The notes under the pieces were generated by a model. That model searched no databases and had not been told where the DNA came from. It saw nothing but the letters and a program-made list of their open reading frames with translations. A DNA stretch of 63,642 nt, counting the filler, from Perkinsus chesapeaki ATCC PRA-425 (taxonomy: Eukaryota; Protista; Perkinsozoa): assembly GCA_013115145.1 (NCBI GenBank). It is 8 parts of 8 records of this genome, joined end to end, with 100 filler letters (N's around TTAATTAATTAA, not from the genome) between each part and the next. Parts side by side here need not be neighbours in the genome. Positions count along the whole stretch, not along the records: positions 31,003 to 48,362 come from JAAPAO010000683.1; 7 more parts are not named here. One strand, 5' to 3'. Positions 2,856 through 48,362 of the stretch are shown piece by piece. The translations under genes and the position numbers were made by a program. How positions within the stretch are numbered: the first letter of the stretch is position 1; each line of letters begins with the position of its first letter.

Positions 2856-5063
2856 TTAGGCATGTACACTTTGCATTGGTATGAATTCCTAAAGGTAATA
2901 TAAAGAATATTGAAATGTATGTGTCATAATACGTACAATCGCAACTGTAGCAGCATTATCCTCTATTAATGTAGCATGCCCCCAGAATTCTGGTATATAT
3001 AATATATCACCTAATAATATTGAGATAGTAACACTCCTAAGCTACTCCTACCTGGTAGCTGTTCTAACTCTATAACATGTTCGACATCACTTCCACGCCA
3101 CACATCCCATTCAACACCCGATGGTAGATGAGACCAAAATGAATATCTTGATGGTTTTAAAAGCCACTTTTTCCGACCACATAATAATAACTATCATAAA
3201 AGTCATAACAATAATGATGCCTTTAACAACAAGCAGCAGCAGTAGGAGTAGTAGTAGGAGTAGTAGGAGTAGTAGTAGGAGTGGTAGTAGGAGTGGTAGT
3301 AGGAGTGGTAGTAGGAGTGGTAGTAGGAGTAGGAGTGGTAGTAGGAGTGGTAGTAGGAGTAGTAGTAGTAGTAGTAGTAGGAGTAGTAGTAGGAGTAGTA
3401 GTAGGAGTGGTATGTTACATTTAAAGCAGCATGATGAGTATGCATCTGTGATCCAGCTTTAGGTGGTCCAATACCAAACTGTGGATATCTAGCATAAGCT
3501 ACATTATTCGGTCCAAGTAAGCTGAGCAACGCCTCTCCGTAATATTTTATTAATGCTTGTTTATGGCCCAAACTGGCATCAAATCCATAAAGTGGTGCCT
3601 GACATGCCCTAACCGGGAATTGAACTCACGACCTTATTGTCATCACTTTCATATTCGTATCATGATTTGCATATTGTTGAATATATTGGGCTAATCTGAT
3701 ACTCTCCTGCCGATAACTGAATATATTATGTGCATAGTTCAATCTTTAAAGTAGTATTATCATCTTTACCCTAATATTTTGCCATAAGGTATTTGTGACA
3801 CAGCCAAAGTCTGAATGAGCAAACTATCGGGAATGCTACTGAATCCATTATCCCATACAAAGTGAGGTAGAAGTGAGCGTATAATAACCTGAACAATGGT
3901 AATGTTGGTGCTAATGACTGATATTAATCATAAGGTCGTCGCCGTGAACATGAGCTATATTACAGGTTTATTCATAGTAAGGTAATAATCCCATTTTATT
4001 ATACGTTCCTTATTGTTCAGCTTATTAAGGACATCATATTCTATACCATAATATTCTTTATTGTCCTCTATATTACTAATACCTCCACCAACAAGTGATA
4101 TTAGATAATTAGATCTAAATGTCAGATATCCCTAATTATTTAATATTTAATATCATCACATGTTTTGCCATCCCCAAGCCACTGCAAGATGAGCAGGAGT
4201 TCTACCATAATTATCGATTGAATTTAATACTCCTTCCAGATCACCATTTACTCGTTTAATTCCTTCAATTAGCTTGTTAATAACCTGATAACCACGATGA
4301 TGATCCTTTATCGTATTTGCTCTTGTTGTTGTTATAATGATTGCCTGTAGATTGCCAGAAGCTGCTGCTAAATGCATTGTAGTGCACCCATTATGATCTC
4401 TTCTATTAACATCAATATCATCCAAACTCATCGTTACATCACAAACATCACTTTGCCATTTATGTAGGCCCATTCGAACTTCCTCAGAGGACACTGGTCT
4501 ACACTGGACTGCTTGCTGCTGTTGCCTGTTGTTGTCTTTGCAGAATGTGTATCTTTACGACATATCTTTATATAGTATTAATATTGCCGGCTCCTTTACC
4601 CGTATAATGTATCTGGTTGTATTGACGGTATTCGTTTAGTTCCTGCCATTATCCTGTATTATTATTATATACTTTTATTTTAACATTAACCTACGCATTA
4701 GCCTTATGTCTTGGTGTTGCTAATAATGCTGCCATTAATGGTGTTCTATTATCAATTGAACTATGATGTGATGAAACATACATGGCATTTACATCTCTTC
4801 CTTGAATATCCTCTGAATTATATTATTTATAGTAATTCATAGTTATTGTATTACTTCTATTATTAACTATATTATTTGGCATAATCATTCCATCATTTGA
4901 AGTGGGCGGCCTTTGAAGATCCTTCAATGCATTTATTGATGTTGTCCTTCTAACATGATGATGTATCTATAATTTAATATTCTATATATTGCCTTTAACC
5001 TACTAAAGTAGACCATCGTGATGACCACTGTGGCACTAACCATCTACGACACCACCTTCTCAT
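2856..5063 (-). CDS. Multi-exon ankyrin-repeat + JmjC (JMJD8-like cupin) protein
   Basis: Ankyrin motifs DHNGCTTMHLAAASG and DNYGRTPAHLAVAWG. Spliced C-terminus QFGIGPPKAGSQMHTHHAALN|LLLCGRKKWLLKP..EQLPG|DILYIPEFWGHAT..EFIPMQSVHA*. The start (5063) is tentative. Confidence 0.8.
3238..3409. repeat. Compound AGT/AGG/GGT microsatellite inside a JmjC intron
   Basis: Runs of AGTAGG, AGTGGT and (AGT)n. It lies between donor AAT|GTAACA and acceptor ATAG|TTA on the minus strand. Confidence 0.9.
3599..3646 (-). other. 48-nt intron containing a tRNA 3' fragment (sense orientation)
   Basis: GTGATGACAAT-AAGGTC-GTGAG-TTCAATT-CCCGG-TTAGGGC-A-TGTCAG. Removal restores the frame ..DTNMK|APLYGFD.. Confidence 0.8.
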
Positions 5064-36779: not shown

Positions 36780-39362
36780 GAGTCACTTAGCTAAAACATT
36801 CAATACCTTCAACATCACACAGCTAATAGAAAGCTGCGGAACTACAAAGGACGGTGAAGAAATAACCACTCCGACTGGCAGTCGGCGAATGTGTCCACCT
36901 TGAACAAAATGACGAAGGTGCAGTCGGCTATCACCATGGACATAAGAGAGTTCCATCCTTCTCGAGATCTTCAACTGCAGGGATCATCAATTGGAGCTAG
37001 AACAGGTAGCATTCCCTTAAGAGCATGCAATAGAACGGGACAAGTGATGATAGACCGTGATTCTGATCTGAAGAAGATTACCAGCTTTACAGATTTTGCG
37101 TGTTGTTTTCTGAGGTATGCTCAAACTATGTCGGTGTTCCATCCTATGTCTGACAAGAGCTCTAATGTCTCCGACACTGGATATGTTCCAGGAGTGAGTT
37201 TCTACGACTTACTCGCCTACTGGCGTAGACTCTACGATAGTGCAGTTCCTTTGACTGTGGTTGGGGTTCTTATGTACGACCGTCAGTACAGAGACCAGTT
37301 AGCGCTAAAAGTTAGTCAAAGAACAGTGGCTATGAGTGACGGCTTTCGAACGGATGTCAGTCCAAGTATCATGGCTGCGGCCTTAGCTCAGGCCAACCAC
37401 TTGGCGATTATGCGGGGAGTGTCTTCATCATCTTTGGTCTCGGACACGTCGAGGAGGCCGTCACCAGCCTTGTGCAGGATTTCCTCAAAGGTCGGTGCCA
37501 CTTCGGAAAGGACTGCAATTACTCCCATGACTTATCCTCGAGGCCCGCCCAGCGCAACACCAACCCTCCGTATTCAAGGCCTTCCGGTAACAACGGTGTC
37601 CAAGTTAACAACTCACATAGCCAGGCATCGGGTCAGCCTACCGGGAGCGTTGGGCAGAGAGGCGGTAAGAACTAGATATCGCTTAGCGTTTTTTTTATTT
37701 TTTTCTTCAACTCTATTCGTTCCTGTTCTAAGTAAATCCTTACGAAGGATAGTGAGTCATAGCATAGTAAGTTTTGAGTATAAGTGTAGGGCAGATTGCC
37801 CTGTCGTGGAAATATAGTGTCAGATCATACTTGTTTGAGGAGAGTTGCGTATATTAGTGAGTTTAATCTGTTTTAGGTGGTGAGGGTGCTAAATACCATG
37901 GCACCGTCAGCGATTACCAAGATGGTTCGGGCAAGCCGAAGATGTTTCCGTCATCGGACGTGGTTCGCGACGATCACCGTGATCTACATAGATTTCTTGA
38001 GTTAGTGGGGAGAGTAATCGATGATTACGAACTCCACATCGTCCTACAGAATAGCATCGGTGAAGACGGCCGTCTGCTGCCTGAGCGCGCGGAAGAAGTA
38101 GCGGGTCTTTTTGATAGAGCCACTGTAGAGTCACGACGATTGGTACAACAACAGTTTAACGTTGATCTTGGAACGGCGGCTGTCGGGGGGGCGTTGAGGC
38201 CTAGTTTGCTACAGTGGCTTAGCGACGTGGCTGGTGATTCAGACAACGACGTGGAGCTTTGTGGTGAGCTCAACAACGGGATCATCCCGTTCGATGATGG
38301 CTAGATTCATCCCTTGCGGCAAGGGAAATGGCGTCATTTATACGCAATGATCATGCTGCGGCAACACAGAGCAAGTACGGTTCCGTTGCTGACTTCTACC
38401 GTGAGGTGGTTGGGATTGTAACCCGCCCTTTTCCTGCAACGGGTTTGTCAATTACGTTATTTATAGTATAAATTTTATACGGAGTTTAAAGCCGCGCGGG
38501 CTATAAGTATTCTACAGTCAATAGTTATGTTAGTGCAGTAAAGACTACGAACCTGTCATATGGTCATAAGCTATCGGTTTTTGATGAGTATCAGATTGCA
38601 AAGGCGCGCAAATCAGCGGCAAAAATATGCGATTTATCACTGGAGCAAAAGGAGCCTTTAACGCGAGGCCAAGTCGTCGCGCTTGGCGATTTAGACGCCC
38701 ACTATAATAACTCATATGTAACCGCGTGTTTGGTGGGTATATATGCGTTTTTAAGGCCAAAGGAGATCATAAACTTGAATGGTGCGGACTTGTCGTTTCC
38801 GATTGTGTATAGCCGATCAGTCGCAAAATTAGTAATTAGATTTTCGAAGACCAATCAGTGCGGGAAAATGGAGTTTGTGTATGTGGGCTGTGTGTCGGGT
38901 AGGCCGCACGATCAGACCTGCGTTCATCATTGCGCGTTTCATCGCCTGTTGAAGTTGTCCGTACGACAAGCAGATTTACCGCTTTTCATGATCTGTGGGG
39001 AACGCTTGAATTACGATAAGTTCTCATCCGAATTCCGCTGCGTCCTGCGACGCATTGGGGTCCTAACCTTAAGTCTTGAGGATTACGGGCTTCATTCGTT
39101 GCGTCGAACTGGAGTCCAGTTGGGTTATGGCCAAAATGTGGATGAGCATGTGCTGAGAGAACAGGGGCGTTGGTCTTCTAATGCTATACACGAATACCTC
39201 CGGGGGGCCTCTGCGCCCAAACGAGTTCGTTTAGCTGAAGTGATGATGAGAGATGGCGAAGAGCTCGAGTGTGTTTCACATGAAGGTGTGTATCCCGTCC
39301 CGGAGGGTAGATATGCGATCTGTATCGATATTTATAGTGTGCATCTATCTCGTACACAATAG
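36780..39362 (+). mobile_element. Internally deleted DIRS/Ngaro-type YR retrotransposon (gag - truncated pol - YR)
   Basis: Gag (36891-37675) is homologous to the 44609 gag (DLLAYWRRL vs DLIIYWRRL) and has a frameshifted CCCH finger. The pol N-terminus (37877-38304) is homologous to 46276. RT and RNase H are absent. YR follows on the same strand. Confidence 0.8.
38560..39362 (+). CDS. Tyrosine recombinase of YR retroelement (5' end degraded)
   Basis: Catalytic R (FLRPKE), K (SKTNQ), HxxR (HSLRRTG) and GRWSSNAIHEY (W, Y). Confidence 0.85.
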
Positions 39363-39529: not shown

Positions 39530-40080
39530 GGTGAAGCGTCTCTCCGGTGGATAGCTGCCAAGTCGCTAGTGTCGATATATATATCGGCACCCTGAACCCT
39601 CTGCAGCAGAGGCTCTGCTAGTGGCAGCGGCACCACCGCGTTGAGCGCTATGACCTCGAAATTTGATTGCCCACCCGGTTTGCGGGCTTCGGGTCTCAAC
39701 TTCGCGTTTCGATACCACACCACTCGGGAGGAAGGAATGAAAGTAATACAGGTTAACGAAGTTGAACCCTTTCACTTGAGGACGTCTCCCGATTGAGTTT
39801 GGCACGCTCGTTTATGAGTATGTAGCGTTTGGATTTTTATGGGCGAGCGAAGTATGTTTCGATGACTGTGAGCAAAAGTAAGGTTATTTTCGAGTTTTTT
39901 TTTTTTTTATTTTCTTTTCCCGTCCCGCCCTTGCTGGTGAAGCGTCTCTCCGGTGGATAGCTGCCAAGTCGCTAGTGTCGATATATATATATATATATAT
40001 ATATATCGGCACCCTGAGCCCTCAATTTCGGGTTTCGATACCACACCACTCGGGAGGAAGGAAGGAAGGAACGAAAGTAA
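39530..40080. repeat. Pair of direct repeats (39530-39746 and 39936-40080) downstream of YR
   Basis: GGTGAAGCGTCTCTCCGGTGGATAGCTGCCAAGTCGCTAGTGTCGA(TA)nTCGGCACCCTGA..TTTCGATACCACACCACTCGGGAGGAAGGAA occurs twice. The second copy has a longer (TA)n and an internal deletion. Confidence 0.9.
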
Positions 40081-40775: not shown

Positions 40776-42120
40776 GGGATGTTAACGATTGGTACACGTA
40801 AATTAGGTACACTTAATGTTTGATCTCCATAAATCACGTTCATACTCAACTCGTTTGCTTGAAACACGTACACAGTCAGCTCGTTCGCTCCTATCCAGAT
40901 CATCGGCAGTTCGACCACCAAAAGTACGTTCACTATTATCTCGTATCCATAAGCTCGGTACACTTGCATTCAGTACACTAAAAGTTCGTACACTTTCATT
41001 TCGTTCACCCCCATTTCATACACCAAAATCTCAATCCACACTTTTTTCATACACGCATATCTCGTACACTTTCATTTCGTACACTCGAAAAATTTTAAAA
41101 GGCAGTTGATGCGGCCGCATCAACTGCCTTTTAAAATTTTTCGGCGCTTAACTCCCAGCATGGTTACCCCGCGCTTTCAGCTTCTCACACTCCCATGAAC
41201 TGAAAATACCCCGGGTTAAATATCCCGCTCCTGGGCGCGTGGGTCTGGTGGGCTGGTAGGCTGTGGGTCGAGCCTAGCCCTCGAAGCATCGAGTCGGTCC
41301 AACAAACGTACCCCATAGGGGGCCGCGTAGATTACGTTCCGGCGGCGCGGCGCGACAAATTGTCGCTGACAAATTCGGTCGACTTGGCGCACCGTCGGCG
41401 GACCAACCGATGCTTGCTCCCGGGAGCGGAGGGATGGGATAAAATATATCGCAAGCGGCGGCAGTTTTCGGGAAATGACTGACCACGATACCGGTTGCCG
41501 AGAGCCGTTTCGCGAAACCGCACGCTGACGATGAGCTGCGCACCACGGATGATACGATATTGTGTCGCGGAAGCGCGCTGTGTGCCGCGCCCATTCGCAT
41601 CGGCATTTAACATGCGTTAACATGTTAACACTCATTAGATTCGAACCTAAAACCATGCCCATGTCAGATAGCCCTCATACCACTAGAGCAATCCTACGTG
41701 GAGTCACCGACTCCTCGGAGAGAGGTCCATGAGCGCGCGGCGTCACGCCGCCCTGCGCGCGCGTACGGAACGCCACGTTAACTGGATACCCGCCGGATTT
41801 TACAACGAGACACTATCGTGTATCGATATATAAAATCCCTGCTAAGTATCCGTCGTCAACACAGTAGAACATTGGGCGAGCTGCGAGGACGAACGGCTGC
41901 TTAGGAGAGACTACAGGGTGTCTCTACGGCTTCCCAAATCTTAGTGTACGACACTCATATGAACGGAATTTTTGTGTACTACTTGGCCCCGAACCTATTT
42001 TTGGCATTTTGTCGACAGAGATTTGAGTGTACGGGAATTCGGTGTACCAGTCAAAAGTCAAAAATTCCGTGTACGAGTTTCATGTGTACGTAATTTATGT
42101 GTACCAATCGTTGTACACGC
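40776..42120. mobile_element. Non-autonomous DNA transposon, GTACAC-repeat family, copy A
   Basis: Left arm 40776-41087 is nearly identical to 58897-59208. Right arm (about 41943-42120) matches about 59867-60052. Terminal inverted sequence AACGATTGGTACAC / GTGTACCAATCGTT. No matching TSD found. Confidence 0.8.
41086..41143. repeat. Perfect 58-bp palindrome centred on GCGGCCGC
   Basis: CGAAAAATTTTAAAAGGCAGTTGATGCGG|CCGCATCAACTGCCTTTTAAAATTTTTCG. Confidence 0.95.
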
Positions 42121-42199: not shown

Positions 42200-44082
42200 G
42201 ATCTTGCGGAGAGTCCCAATGGCAATTAGAGAGACGTCAGCACCAGTGTCGTAGAGGACAGGGCGCACAACACCGCAAACAGATAGATCATCAACGACCA
42301 TAGAGATCTTAGAGGATCTAGACGACGTGCTAGAAGAATGAACACCATTATCAGTATGGAATGCATTAGACTTGGAGTTGAGGTCGGCAGTACTAAGGGG
42401 AGAGACCCATATAGTAGAGTTAGGGTCTGAAGATTGTTGAACTCGTCGACCACTTGAGCATTAGTAGAACGTGTCGATGGACCAGGCCGGGTGGTAGACA
42501 ATTTACCAGGCCGGTATCGATTACCTGCCTTGAACTTCTGCTTATTAGACTTAGCAGTCCTGCCCTTTGATTCCTGGTTTTCGGGTCGGGGTCCACAGGT
42601 TTAGAAGCCGGGCATACATAAGCTAGATACCCAGACTTTAGACGTCTTTGACAGTTCAAGGACTTAGTGGGGACCTCGCACAGATCAGTAGAGTGGTTGC
42701 GGTTACCACAATTAGAACATCTAGTCGCTATATCACTAATCTGACCAGCACATAGACGCGCAGGATGGCCAGATTGTAAACAGCGATAACAAGCGATAGA
42801 CATAGAGTCAGCACCGACCGCGAACGGATAGGGATCAGTAGACTCGCTATCAGTAGCTTCTAAAGTATGAAGTCGAGCAGTAGAAGAACCATTAGACTTG
42901 TTCTTAGCGGACAGACGAGAAGTGACTATCTCATCATAGAGCTTTTGTCGTTATTCACGCCCAAGTCGACGACGCTCGAAGTTCGACAAGGTAGAAACGA
43001 GCTTATCATAAGACACTCTAGAGTCGCTGAGCTCCTTGTCAACCTTCTCACGTAGATATTCGGAGTTGAGACCATCGTAGAGGCGACGCTTGAGAATGTA
43101 CTCATAGGTGCAGATACCCATAAAGTGGAGCTCGGCAACAATAGTCCATTGTCAATAGACTCTAATCTCTCAATATAGTTAGAAAGAGACTCGGAGCTAC
43201 CTTGACGACAGGTAACAACTTGTTACCTGTCGTTACTGGGGTTACTATCGAAAGTGGGGCTTTGTTGATTGAAATATGCCTTGTGTTTTATTAATTTGCC
43301 CTTGTGTTGGACGAATTCAGCCTTTCGTTTTTTATTTCTGACTTTTGTTTTACGATTTTCAATCTTCATTCTAGGAGTAGCTACGAACTCTGAATTTCAT
43401 TCGTCTAATAATGACTTTCGTTCAGTGATTTGAAACTTTTGTTTGACGAAAAGCTGGTTTTGTTCATTCAACTTTCCCTTTTGTTTGACGAATTTGAGAT
43501 TGAAAAGGTGTAGATGAGTTGGAGTGCTCCGAAGTACGTACAATAGGGGCTTTAGGACGATGACTATCGTGTCTAGAAGTAGAAGAACTACTAGAAGACG
43601 ATGCAGTGAACATGTGATCTAGAACCAGCACGGATCTTGTGATGGTAAGAGCCGCGATCTTGAGAGTGCGAACCACTAGAAACGACATGCTGAGCAGAGT
43701 GCTGTAGTGAACGAGAACCACTAGAATGCACTTTAGAATTCTCTACACGAGATGAAGACAAATTCAGAGGCAGAGGCAAACAACTAGAAGGCATAGCAAT
43801 CGAATAGGGCACTAGAGAAAGTTGACCTTCAGGCCCTGGTACCATTTTCCAATTAAAATTGGTGGCACCTTCTGGTAGTTGAGGAACACTACCAGATAGA
43901 GAAATAGCATGCTGTAGTAGACCTCCTTGAGTCGTAGCAACCTTACAAGAAGATTCGAAGTTGCTGTAACCAGTAGCTGCAGCAGCTAGAGTTTCCTTAG
44001 AAACGGTCTTGTTCTGAATGTCAAGAGCCTTGCGCTTAGCGGCGGCCTTAGAGGTCGGAGTCCTGACAATGGTACCGGCCAT
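42200..44082 (-). pseudogene. Degraded LTR-retrotransposon gag-protease
   Basis: CCHC knuckles CYRCLQSGHPARLC and CSNCGNRNHSTDLC. Retropepsin motif PVLYDTGADVSLI near 42225-42262. Broken frames. Confidence 0.7.
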
Positions 44083-44097
44083 ATAGACAGTGCCAAC

Positions 44098-44335
44098 GGG
44101 TGTATCATGTCTCGTACACCGAAAACTCGTACACTTTCACTTCGTTCACCAACCGTACACTGAATACTCGTACACCCCTCGGATCCGTACATCGTTAATT
44201 CGTACACCTTCAATTCGTACACATAAAACTCGTACACCCAATACCCGTACACAAAAAAATCGTACACATAAAACCCGTACACAAAAAACCCGTACATCGA
44301 ATACCCGTACACTATCAAGTCTTACACATTCTCGA
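44098..44335. mobile_element. Isolated terminal arm of a GTACAC-repeat transposon relative
   Basis: Begins GGGTGTAT (reverse complement of the ATACACCC terminus), followed by many CGTACAC units. Confidence 0.65.
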
Positions 44336-44608
44336 GGTCAATTTATTGGGCAGATTAATTCGCGCCCTGAGGCACAGGCGTGCGTGCAGAATATAACACA
44401 ATCGCGCGCGCGTGCAAACATCATGCGTACATTGAACCACTCAGGATCTAAACTGAGACGCGAGGGTCCTTTCTAGTAAACCAAGCCCGAGCCCAGCGGC
44501 CGGCCTGTGCTAGTAGCGACAAGAGACTTGTATAAGCGCTAGTAGCGCGGTCTCCAAACCCCCCCTTTTTTTTACAGTTATTGACCATCAGTCAACTACT
44601 CCACCCCT

Positions 44609-46009
44609 ATGGCCAACCCTAATAACGGTATTAATGGCAATGGAGGCGGAAACGGCATCCCCAACAACAACAACAACAATGGCGACAACAATAACAACAA
44701 CAACAATAATGACAACAACAACAACAACAACGCTAATGGCAACAATGGTAACAACAATGCTAACAACCATGGTAACAACAATGATAACATCAACGGTAAC
44801 AACAACGGTAACATCTACGGTAACAACAACGGCAACAACAACGCTAACCATGGCAATAACGCCATTGGTAACAACAACGGTAACGCCCTTGCCCTAGGTG
44901 CCGAGGCTCGCCCCAAACCTATCAATGACGACCTACTTCGGCTTACGAATGGACTAGACAAGGTCCCAGTCAAACGCGTCCTCGATCTCTGCTCCCAGCT
45001 TGGTATAACCACAGCCGAAATCCTAGCAACGACCGCCAAGCAAGAGGCTGTCTGTGGCGCTATAACTAGGTCGTTGGCCGTCAATGAGCAGATTATCTGG
45101 GGCGTGCTATGCGAAAGGGCAACCGCAGTCCGAAATAGCCCGGTCAAAGTCGATATGGTGGAACTGTCCGGCCTCCTCGCCAACATGACGCGCAAGTATG
45201 GCAGCCCCCCTGATGCGTCCCTAATAACGTCGAGGGCGAGCATCCTAACTAAGATGAAGAAGATAGACGAGGCTCTGACCATGGACATCATGGAGCTGCA
45301 CCCAAACCGAGAGTCCAAGTCGGCGAACCGCAGCACCATCAACATCTCCGAAAACAATCAGCTAGTGACCGAAGAGGAAACTCCGAAGGGTAAGGCTCGG
45401 GATTTCTCGGAGTTTTCGATTTGCTTTATGCGCTGGGCAGTGATGCTGTGTACCATTCACCCTATGTCTTCCAACGCCGACACGTGCCAAACCAGCGGAG
45501 CCAGCCTCATCGACCTCATCATTTATTGGCGCAGGCTTGCTGATCTATTGGCCCCGCTGACCATGGATCACCTGGTTCAGTACGACAGCGACTACCGAAG
45601 GCGGGTCGCCATTATGATAGCTGGTGAATCCACTACGCTCTCCGAGGCTCTGAGACAAGACGTGGCCCCTACGGTGTTATCAAGCGCTCTGGCGACAGCG
45701 GCAATGGCAGCGGCGGCGGCTACTAAGAAGAATAACGACTCCAAGCCCACCAAGACTCAGAAGGCGCCAAAGTCGAACGATGCATGCTACCACTTCCTTC
45801 GCGGCTCATGCCGCCGCGGCAACTCCTGTCGCTTTGTCCACGACACCCAGGAGCAAAAGCGCCGCAGGTCGACGCCAGCCTTTGGTCAGAGGTCGGAGCC
45901 GTATGATCGCCAGTCGCAACATGAACCTAAATCATCTTGGTCAAGCTATGCTTCTCCCAAAGACAGCCCTTCGAGCGCCGAAGCCAGTCGGAAGGCTAAA
46001 AGTGAGTAA
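44609..46009 (+). CDS. Gag of DIRS/Ngaro-type retroelement: Asn-rich N-terminus, CCCH finger
   Basis: 466-aa ORF with a poly-N/G tract and CYHFLRGSCRRGNSCRFVH, immediately upstream of RT/RNase H. Confidence 0.8.
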   Translation: MANPNNGINGNGGGNGIPNNNNNNGDNNNNNNNNDNNNNNNANGNNGNNNANNHGNNNDNINGNNNGNIYGNNNGNNNANHGNNAIGNNNGNALALGAEARPKPINDDLLRLTNGLDKVPVKRVLDLCSQLGITTAEILATTAKQEAVCGAITRSLAVNEQIIWGVLCERATAVRNSPVKVDMVELSGLLANMTRKYGSPPDASLITSRASILTKMKKIDEALTMDIMELHPNRESKSANRSTINISENNQLVTEEETPKGKARDFSEFSICFMRWAVMLCTIHPMSSNADTCQTSGASLIDLIIYWRRLADLLAPLTMDHLVQYDSDYRRRVAIMIAGESTTLSEALRQDVAPTVLSSALATAAMAAAAATKKNNDSKPTKTQKAPKSNDACYHFLRGSCRRGNSCRFVHDTQEQKRRRSTPAFGQRSEPYDRQSQHEPKSSWSSYASPKDSPSSAEASRKAKSE

Positions 46010-46135
46010 TTGGTTTCTATTGTCGCCGATAAGTTATCGGCTTCTACTAATCGTATTTCGTTGACTCGTCTTCGCGCTGCGTTCTGGGAGTGCCCAGAGT
46101 CTAATAAGACAACAGACTACACCACTCGCCCTCAG

Positions 46136-48285
46136 ATACAGGGCCGGGTAAGAGCCACTCGTGGCCGTGTGATGAGCTGCGCGAGCGCGAACCCGACGCC
46201 CCAGCGGGCTTCCAAGATGGTACGGGAATTTCCGCAGAGCTCCCCGCAGATGACGCCACACACCCGCCCAAGGCGGTGTCCGATCACGAAGCGAAAGCCT
46301 TCTACATCATCAACAGGATCACTCAGAAGTGGCGGCTTGCTGAAGAGCTAAGCACCAGTCTAAGTCCATCCGGAGCCATCCGGGCCGAGTGCATAGACCG
46401 GATTAATCTACTCTTCATCGATGCCTCAAACGACCTCCGCAGAGAGCTCACTGAGGCCTTCCCAGGGTACGGTGCGGAGACCGCTAGGGTCGGTGGTCCC
46501 TTATACCCCGGAATCATCCGTCTGCTGAGTACAATTTTTGACGAGGGCCGAGATCCTACACTGGCGGACGAATTAAACAGCGGTGTACACCTTGGGGCTC
46601 TGACTACGCTGTCCGTCTCTGGAGTCTTTCCACCGAAAGATACCCAGAAGCCCAGGGAGGAGTTCGCTCCGTGCAGAAGCCCCCACTATGAGAACTATGT
46701 CAGCGCGCGCGATGCCAAACAAGCGGTCGAAGAGGCAATACAAGCCGAAGTTAGAGCTGGTAAGATCAGAGAACTAGCCCCTCATCAACTCCGCACCCCC
46801 GGAAGGCTGTTTAGCAAGCTTGCGGCCATACCCAAGCGCCTGGATGCCTCAGGGAACCCAACTGCCTACAGATTGGTAGAGGACCTGAAACGAAGTGGAA
46901 CTAATCAGCTGATAGACCTACATGAGAGCGTACAGCTTCCTTCAGCGGGAGACCTCAAGCAGCTCGCCCAGAACCTAATTTTCGACGATACGGGTGCTCT
47001 CAAGGACTACGTCGGAGCAGTGACGGACTTCGAAGGGGCGTATCGCCACCTTTTCATCTGCCCTGAAGAGCGACACCTTTGCTCCCTGAAGCTGAACAAT
47101 AAATACTATGAGAACCTCGCGATGCCCTTCGGGGCCCCCAGCTCTTGCTGGAACTTCTGCAGGCTATCCAGCAAGTCACATCGCATACAGCATCGGCTTG
47201 GAGAAATATCGCGCATACTAACCGGACAAAGCGAGTCCTCGCGAGGGCTTATATACATTGATGATGCTATATGGCTGTTACCGGTGGCTGGATACTTTAC
47301 CTTACTGGTCAAACTCCTGGTAGTTCTACCACTCATCGGGCTCCAAATATCGTGGCGCAAATGTATCTACGGCTCCAAAAGTCTGCGCTTCATAGGATAC
47401 TCGATCGACATTGGCACTGGTGCACGGCAGGGACCACATATCAGCATCCCCCCCGGGAAGCTCGAGAAAATTAAGTCCGAGCTCGCCGCTCTCCAGGCCC
47501 AGGGGGCCACAGGAGCGTGGGTTAAAGACATAGAACGGCTATCTGGGCGGCTGAACTGGATCTCAATGGTGTGTCCTTTCACACGCTCCTTTATCTCACC
47601 CTTGTACGCAATTTGCCAAATGGCGTGTAAAAAGGGCCTACACAAGGTTCAATTCTCGAAGTCATCCGAGACGCACAAATGTCTCAGCTGGTGGGCAAGC
47701 ATTGTAGACGAAGCCATACTGCCAATGAACCCCTTTAGGCTAGCTCTACCCTTAGCCCCTACGGCCATACAGGACCGTGTCCGTATAGCAACTGATGCGT
47801 CCACCATAGGCATTGGTGGTTGGGCTTCATATCGGGGACGAGTCCTGTGGTTTAAGGTCGACTTAACCAACGTTGACAACCTGCACGGATGGAGACAGTT
47901 CTTGGTCAACAAGAGCTCCCCGCAGTCAGGTGATATGGTTCTGTTGGAGACGATGGCAGGCGTAATAGGTATCACGGCTGCTCTAGACGGCTTCGAAGAA
48001 GGTATTTCCGACCGCACATGCTTCTCCTTCTTTACCGACAACGCTGGCACGAAGCGGGCGCTGACCAAGTTTAGGTCTCCCACGCCCAGAATTAACGCTA
48101 TCCTTATGGCGACTGTAAGTCGACTTGCCAGAGTATGTTATCGATGGCATGCTGAGTATATACCATCGGCCGAAAACAAGGCGGCAGACATCATAAGCCG
48201 CGAGGCTAAACCCGCACCTTTCCTCCCAAAGCACTGGATTAGACTTAAATGTCATCTACCTCCCGCACTTCCGGCCTGTCTCTGA
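46136..48285 (+). CDS. Pol (RT + RNase H) of DIRS/Ngaro-type retroelement
   Basis: RLVEDLKRSG, DFEGAYRHL, AMPFGAPSS, YIDD, then RNase H ATDAS, LETMA, TDN, ADIISR. No integrase or protease. The frame is open from 46108. Confidence 0.9.
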
Positions 48286-48289
48286 TAGT

Positions 48290-48362
48290 GGTGTTCATGT
48301 CCCATACACCGAATACTCGTACACCTTCGACTCATGTCTCGAATACTCGTACATTTACGACC
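48290..48362. mobile_element. Partial GTACAC-family arm directly after the pol stop, cut by a gap
   Basis: GGTGTTCATGTCCCATACACCGAATACTCGTACACC resembles 44098-44170. Confidence 0.55.

Follow-up and report, generated by a model that had tools for sequence, protein, structure and literature searches.

A predicted spliceosomal intron between gag and pol in a clade of Perkinsus tyrosine-recombinase retrotransposons

Introns in described retroelements

Retroelements are expected to lose introns, since they are copied through RNA, and their usual way of joining Gag to Pol is ribosomal frameshifting or readthrough of a stop codon. The few that keep introns, among them Ogre, the Penelope-like elements and the retroviruses, show how an unspliced template is protected and selected. 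The closest analogue of the locus described here is Ogre, a Ty3/gypsy LTR element of legumes that has an intron between its ORFs, the splicing of which has been shown experimentally (Steinbauerova et al. 2008, cited in PMC3735527); the Ogre intron separates the structural from the enzymatic ORF, its removal joins the two, and it is kept in genomic copies, which makes unspliced RNA the necessary template. The mRNA that results from splicing in Drosophila copia and barley BARE1 encodes Gag alone (PMC3735527). Retroviruses possess a major 5' splice donor and a packaging signal within the intron, and only their unspliced RNA is packaged (see PMC10309623). Among the tyrosine-recombinase (YR) retrotransposons, DIRS-1, Ngaro and PAT-like elements combine a gag-like ORF, RT/RNase H and a YR (PMC3783388, PMC3266345, PMC7192593), with ORFs that published accounts call separate, overlapping or frameshifted; a list of hosts of DIRS1-like elements includes P. 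marinus (PMC3266345). Ogre already provides a case of splicing between the ORFs of a retroelement; for YR retroelements we found no description of it, an intron going unmentioned in the YR literature searched, which lies outside the main reviews, so that an earlier remark is possible.

We analysed a stretch of 63,642 nucleotides, here called the window, made up of eight joined parts of the Perkinsus chesapeaki genome. It contains one element with intact gag and pol (element A) and a decayed element of the same clade (element B). We propose that the interval between gag and pol of element A, at 46002-46135, is probably a real and functional spliceosomal intron of a YR retrotransposon. Whereas Ogre is a plant element of the LTR type with a DDE integrase, element A belongs to a tyrosine-recombinase family and comes from an alveolate protist. 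The position and phase of the intron are kept within its clade even where pol identity falls to 24%; for Ogre splicing has been demonstrated, and here it is inferred. The family has the same gene set as DIRS-1, Ngaro and PAT-like elements, and, going by the descriptions of those groups, differs from them in the predicted intron; its Gag has a CCCH finger, and terminal arrays of 15-nt units with CGTACAC accompany element A. If correct, the proposal would amount to a second, independent invention of splicing-controlled Gag-Pol synthesis, in another order of retroelements and another eukaryotic supergroup.

The gag-pol junction and the identity of the element

Based on the ORF list and its translation, the first gag exon of element A spans 44609-46001 (this and the other parts of elements A and B described here lie on the plus strand), and the unspliced gag ORF extends over 44609-46009, coding for 466 aa and ending in a TAA stop at 46007-46009. 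Its product begins with an Asn/Gly-rich region of low complexity (about 44636-44895) and carries towards its end a CCCH zinc finger of the form C-x8-C-x5-C-x3-H (45782-45844), recognized by the Pfam model zf-CCCH (PF00642) over residues 392-412 with 25.7 bits against a cut-off of 20.5; it shares 75% identity with the gag portion of locus L001 in P. olseni. The final codons of the ORF, AGT GAG TAA, include a consensus donor, A|GTGAGT, the GT of which lies at 46002-46003 and the hexamer of which (46002-46007) begins 5 nt before the gag stop codon. From this donor to a pyrimidine-rich acceptor, CTCGCCCTCAG, ending at 46135, we predict an intron of 134 nt, on the strength of the sequence itself and of a homologous interval in all eight complete elements compared below. 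A branch-like CTAAT is situated at 46101-46105, 30 nt 5' of the acceptor AG. As in spliceosomal introns of the U2 type, the interval begins with GT and ends with AG, its donor matches the consensus beyond the GT, and its 3' end is rich in pyrimidines. As the exon ends at 46001 on the first base of a codon, the intron would be of phase 1, and joining 46001 to 46136 gives the in-frame sequence ..SRKAK-N-TGPGK... A second possible acceptor, ATACAG at 46136-46141, has its CAG ending at 46141, 6 nt 3' of the first and also in frame, and in a DNA alignment the CAGATACAG at this site is kept in L001.

The second exon, containing pol, was delimited by translation and by the family profile to 46136-48285. 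Its frame, offset by -1 from that of gag, is closed by a stop at 46105-46107; from 46108 onwards it stays free of stops until a TGA at 48283-48285, with a TAG directly following, and its product comprises 715 aa. The first ATG in this frame is at 47122, coding for the methionine of LAMPFG, 44 codons 5' of the YIDD motif, which leaves 328 codons after the acceptor devoid of ATG. Recognizable motifs include FQDGTG (46210-46227) in a conserved N-terminal region, the YIDD of the reverse transcriptase (47254-47265) and, in the RNase H, TDAS starting at 47791 and ..NKAAD at 48175-48189. The initial annotation had proposed this arrangement, with its donor, branch-like motif, acceptor and alternative CAG, its phase-1 fusion of gag to pol and its pol frame that is open from 46108 yet first offers an ATG within the RT region; each of these is borne out by direct reading of the sequence or by translation.

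To characterize the enzymatic part we used a family profile, A3, built from pol of element A and nine relatives, which matches the Ty3 RT (E=1.6e-14), the RT/RNase H polyprotein of CaMV (E=8.5e-11) and the MMLV RT (1.8e-05). Across the pol family alignment neither YIDD nor the RNase H residues D, E, D and D vary, and together with the profile matches they identify an RT and RNase H of the LTR-retroelement type. The single pol A sequence matched neither Pfam RVT_1, which was hit weakly and by relatives only, nor any entry in a PDB search, where a match came with the family profile. Downstream of RT/RNase H, five related loci (L002, L003, L005, L006 and L011) have an ORF with the tyrosine-recombinase motifs LLRxDE, SKTDQ, HxLRRTG and GRW; when profile A2, built from these ORFs, was compared with the PDB, Cre recombinase came out as the best match, though a weak one (E=0.011), and Pfam searches with the YR ORFs of the relatives gave no match. 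Neither a protease nor a DDE integrase was detected in the gene set of the family. Because the RT/RNase H of the relatives is followed by an ORF with YR motifs, we assign the family, on these motifs, to the YR (DIRS-order) retrotransposons. The label of YR retrotransposon applied earlier to this locus stands for the family, with remnants of a YR also present in element B, and is not matched by a YR gene in element A itself before the end of its piece at 48362, 77 nt past the pol stop; as no such gene is visible up to there, element A may be non-autonomous or truncated.

The flanks of element A are repetitive. Its left flank or terminal region (44094-44330; repeat families D2-D4 and TRF) consists of 15-nt units with the core CGTACAC, for which TRF reports a period of 15, and the heptamer occurs 21 times against 2.1 expected. 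The start of this array (GGTGTATCATGTCTCGTACACCGAA..) recurs at 48288, directly after the pol stop, where the beginning of a second copy occupies 48288-48362 up to the end of the piece. Direct copies of the region thus flank gag-pol, with the right end of element A cut by the piece end, and inverted copies are found at 40790-41090 and 41944-42112. In L002, 42-nt direct repeats are located 5561 nt apart.

Element B, detected by tblastn and translation at 36891-39362, has a gag-like ORF 35% identical to that of element A, with a frameshift within its CCCH finger. Of its pol there remains an N-terminal stub with the motif YQDGSG, RT/RNase H being missing, and tyrosine-recombinase remnants interrupted by stops follow at 38337-39251. 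Between gag and pol, element B has retained a predicted phase-1 intron at 37665-37876.

Conservation of the interval and alternative explanations

We compared eight complete elements, namely A and B from the window and L001, L002, L003, L004, L006 and L012 from the genomes of P. olseni and P. chesapeaki; the comparison loci are genomic loci of fused Perkinsus gene models, and some of the junctions were determined by visual inspection. Each element has a GT..AG interval, about 123 to 311 nt long, between the CCCH finger of gag and the (F/Y)(Q/R)DG(T/S)G motif of pol. Besides element A, with its 134 nt between A|GTGAGT and CCTCAG|AT, the set comprises element B (212 nt, G|GTAAGA to TTTTAG|GT), L001 of P. 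olseni (61% pol identity; 133 nt, G|GTGAGT to CCTCAG|AT), L002 of P. chesapeaki (42%; 311 nt including an AGTC microsatellite, G|GTACGT to GCTCAG|AT), L003 (47%; 270 nt, G|GTAAAG to CTTCAG|GC), L004 (30%; 153 nt, G|GTAAGT to CCTCAG|AT), L006 (24%; 176 nt, G|GTAAGA to CATCAG|GT) and L012 (about 123 nt, G|GTACGT to GGTCAG|GC). The phase is 1 in every case, and only removal of the interval opens a continuous frame between the CCCH finger and the QDGTG motif. The predicted junctions fall at 4560^4694 in L001, 8746^9058 in L002, 1230^1501 in L003 and 4198^4375 in L006. Site and phase are hence kept while length and sequence drift, which is the behaviour of an intron, and the conservation of donor, acceptor and phase among relatives that the initial annotation had named as a check is found throughout the set. 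A partial ninth contig, L005, starts inside the interval and has a phase-1 acceptor preceding YQDGSG. The P. marinus locus L009 was uninformative, having an assembly gap just 5' of pol, and the P. chesapeaki locus L010, a decayed copy of a distant family with weak predicted introns as bridges, was not counted. A search for intron-less genomic copies, likewise suggested earlier, recovered none of the CCCH-gag clade among the loci fetched, a sample that is not an exhaustive coverage of the Perkinsus genomes.

The DNA alignment of element A with L001 shows three conserved stretches within the interval, namely the donor, the acceptor block GCCCTCAGATACAGGGCC and a palindrome of 15 nt, the remainder being of low identity. 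Protein conservation resumes at the first codon past the acceptor, with 50% identity and a pN/pS of 0.44 over 110 codons. The stop of gag comes 1-7 codons past the donor across the eight elements (2-7 in the seven tabulated; 2 codons, GT*, in L012), and the gag and pol ORFs overlap in none. For the seven tabulated elements, the length of the interval modulo 3 is 2, 2, 1, 2, 0, 0 and 2, and in L003 and L004 the gag and pol frames coincide, with several in-frame stops between them. Because the relative frame of gag and pol differs between lineages, only removal of the interval restores the register in all of them. We found no other route to pol in these elements: the initial annotation had held that a conserved frameshift signal or a non-AUG start of pol would speak against splicing, and neither came to light when looked for, the ORFs never overlapping, the relative frame varying and no pol ATG being near. 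Taken comparatively, these features make a strong case for reading Gag-Pol as the product of a spliced RNA.

Four alternatives deserve consideration. The one that we would rank first, while judging it unlikely, is that the interval is an intergenic spacer that is never spliced, with pol being translated on its own through reinitiation, an IRES or a non-AUG start. Such an organization does exist among more distant YR elements, since L011 of P. olseni (31% pol identity) and the metagenomic contigs L007 and L008 have separate ORFs for gag, pol and YR. In L011, the gag lacks a CCCH finger and has no donor at its end, and a 150-nt gap leads to an ATG-initiated pol followed by an ATG-initiated YR. 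Pol of the separate-ORF elements starts with ATG, whereas in the CCCH-gag clade the first ATG of the pol frame comes 21-347 codons 3' of the acceptor and, in the seven elements tabulated, beyond the QDGTG motif except in the decayed element B. Likewise, the pol frame opens just 3-19 codons 5' of the acceptor in these seven, and a spacer leaves unexplained why gag of every lineage ends in a consensus donor and why the phase is always 1. Given the separate ORFs of L011, L007 and L008 and the ATG-initiated pol of L011, the lack of a start codon in pol coincides with the occurrence of the intron, which appears to be derived within the CCCH-gag clade.

A second alternative, to which we give slightly less credit than to a spacer, is that the AG at 46135 serves as an acceptor for spliced-leader trans-splicing, which would generate a separate capped mRNA for pol. 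The spliced-leader sequences of Perkinsus are not known to supply an AUG, and a pol mRNA formed in this manner would still run for hundreds of codons before reaching an in-frame start. Perkinsus does use spliced-leader trans-splicing (PMC3101222), and a pyrimidine tract followed by AG would fit either reaction; trans-splicing, however, accounts neither for the strong donor conserved at the end of gag nor for the constant phase of donor and acceptor. In favour of an intron at this place, introns with canonical GT/AG ends, of 39-1622 bp, are common in host genes of Perkinsus (PMC3101222).

It is more improbable again that the copies are dead relics and that gene predictors, together with the search for bridging GT..AG pairs, created the appearance of an intron. 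The fused Perkinsus proteins in the databases are indeed gene predictions, and a predictor will find some GT..AG pair to bridge two ORFs, as an interval of ~200 nt usually holds one in frame; moreover, some Perkinsus models bridge defects with implausibly short or weak 'introns', and the copies are not all intact, L001 and element B having frameshifts elsewhere. Against this, both gag (466 aa) and pol (715 aa) of element A are intact, the position and phase of the interval are equal down to 24% pol identity, and pN/pS is below 1 right after the acceptor. In every lineage, furthermore, a near-consensus donor hexamer and the gag stop are at most 7 codons apart. The coding strand of the elements has 0.0018 strong-donor-like motifs per nt, or 0.043 expected per 24-nt window, while 6 of the 7 elements scanned have such a motif where gag ends, with L012, found later, having G|GTACGT there; this is more than chance would provide, in a set of eight elements that are mutually homologous and so do not represent independent trials. 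A word search across the junction with the P. olseni fused model P0001 matched only P0001 itself, with no transcript-derived protein among the matches. No reads aligned to the stretch from two small sequencing runs of the same species, which are RNA only by presumption, so that this outcome is a blank and not a negative.

Programmed frameshifting or stop-codon readthrough, the usual retroelement solution and one with which the -1 frame of pol in element A would agree, is of negligible probability and can be set aside because the gag and pol ORFs never overlap, the gag stop at 46007-46009 and the last pol-frame stop at 46105-46107 being ~100 nt apart in element A, with frame offsets that vary (modulo 3 of 0, 1 or 2), several in-frame stops in L003 and L004, and nothing relevant in an Rfam search of 43900-48362. 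Gag-Pol of this clade would thus most likely be made by splicing and not by frameshifting.

Proposed expression of the element

In light of the above, we posit that unspliced RNA would be translated into Gag alone, with the stop codon two codons inside the intron, and that removal of the intron by the host spliceosome would, through the phase-1 junction, place RT/RNase H in register to give a Gag-Pol fusion. Partial splicing would then set the ratio of Gag to Gag-Pol, a role filled by frameshifting or readthrough in other retroelements. The unspliced RNA would serve as the template of reverse transcription, as implied by the survival of the intron in families whose pol identities span 24-61%. 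Such a scheme resembles that of copia and BARE1 in that splicing, rather than recoding, determines the Gag:Pol ratio and the unspliced RNA is the one replicated, with the logic inverted: in those elements the unspliced RNA gives Gag-Pol and the spliced RNA Gag, whereas in element A the unspliced RNA would give Gag and the spliced RNA Gag-Pol. As in retroviruses, the unspliced RNA would be both genome and Gag mRNA; retroviral splicing, in contrast, yields the mRNAs of env and the accessory proteins and not Gag-Pol.

The intron of element A contains a perfect 15-nt palindrome, CCGATAAGTTATCGG, at 46026-46040, identified by DNA alignment and pattern searches, which is identical in L001 of P. olseni (4586-4600) though the rest of the intron has diverged. 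It may be a cis-acting signal specific to unspliced RNA; by analogy with the retroviral packaging signal, which lies in an intron, it could, as pure conjecture, mark the unspliced RNA. Folding of the intron RNA revealed no unusual stability, with z from -1.6 to +1.4 against mononucleotide shuffles.

We also advance, tentatively and as a rather doubtful extension, a broader scheme in which regulated intron retention has replaced translational recoding throughout the YR elements of this Perkinsus clade. Here two conserved phase-1 introns, both predicted, one between gag and pol and the other between RNase H and YR, would allow a single transcript to yield Gag when unspliced, Gag-Pol when the first intron is removed and Gag-Pol-YR when both are, and intronic sequence such as CCGATAAGTTATCGG would mark the unspliced RNA as the sole template. 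If true, this would explain how a retroelement has kept introns over deep time. Perkinsus is culturable and transfectable. Splicing of the gag-pol intron, if true, would make Gag:Pol stoichiometry and the choice of template readily accessible to experiment in YR elements, the replication of which is poorly understood.

The results also bear on the annotation of Perkinsus proteins. The two exons were queried separately, and a search of representatives with pol of element A returned 923 relatives; among the 24 best-scoring ones traced to their source, 19 are gene models of P. olseni, P. chesapeaki and P. marinus (one), the closest relatives all being among these 19, and the other five are Logan, ENA or metagenome sequences. 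Several of the closest models bear the annotation 'C3H1-type domain-containing protein' and join, by prediction, a CCCH gag to pol; Perkinsus proteins so named are models of retrotransposon Gag-Pol.

A second predicted intron at the RNase H/YR boundary

In three relatives that carry a tyrosine recombinase (YR), the genomic loci L002, L003 and L006 from P. olseni or P. chesapeaki, we observed a second predicted intron at the boundary between the RNase H and the YR (about 11070-11180 in L002, 3610-3957 in L003 and about 6447-6510 in L006). It is in phase 1 in all three, splitting a serine codon as A|GT, and in the P. chesapeaki locus L002 it displays a very strong pyrimidine tract, TTCTCATTTTTCTTTTTTTAG. 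The donor site of L003 lies approximately 25 codons away from those of L002 and L006. Once both predicted introns are taken out, each of these loci presents a single Gag-Pol-YR ORF. Element A, the copy in the window, has neither this donor nor a YR as read to the end of its piece at 48362.

A different Perkinsus YR retrotransposon family, represented by the P. olseni locus L011 (2283-6930), encodes a Gag lacking the CCCH zinc finger, the RT/RNase H and the YR as three separate ORFs, each initiated by its own ATG, and no intron signals were found across this locus. This family is well suited as a natural control in comparisons with the clade that carries the intron.

The predicted gag-pol intron and the Gag N-terminus

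Within the predicted gag-pol intron of element A lies a perfect 15-nt palindrome, CCGATAAGTTATCGG (46026-46040), which is kept in the P. olseni locus L001 (4586-4600) and was not found in the more distant elements of the comparison. In L002, AAGTTATCG is situated close to the intron acceptor.

The first ~95 residues of the element A Gag (44636-44895) are nearly purely asparagine, glycine and aspartate, coded by imperfect, AAC-rich 12-nt and 27-nt repeats; the alignment with its P. olseni relative starts only at residue 96.

Repeat arrays and the decayed element B

The CGTACAC core of arrays of 15-nt units occurs 21 times against 2.1 expected. Two of these arrays (44103-44330 and 48293-48362, both +) flank the gag-pol of element A in direct orientation, and an inverted pair (40790-41090, +; 41944-42112, -) encloses the segment 41086-42064, at whose start lies a perfect 58-nt palindrome (41086-41143). 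We propose that the arrays probably serve these YR elements as terminal or recombination repeats. An oppositely oriented ORF of 163 aa (43591-44082, -), for which Pfam returned zero matches, ends immediately at the left array of element A.

Element B (36891-39362), which represents a second, decayed family within this clade, retains the predicted gag-pol intron; its CCCH finger is interrupted by a frameshift, its RT/RNase H is wholly missing and its YR contains stops. Element B could be a derivative that arose by internal deletion and is possibly non-autonomous. Just 3' of it is a ~400-nt tandem duplication (39530-40067), in which 55-nt and 47-nt segments match at 94-100% identity with a spacing of 326-422 nt; an (AT)13 run (39981-40006) falls within it.
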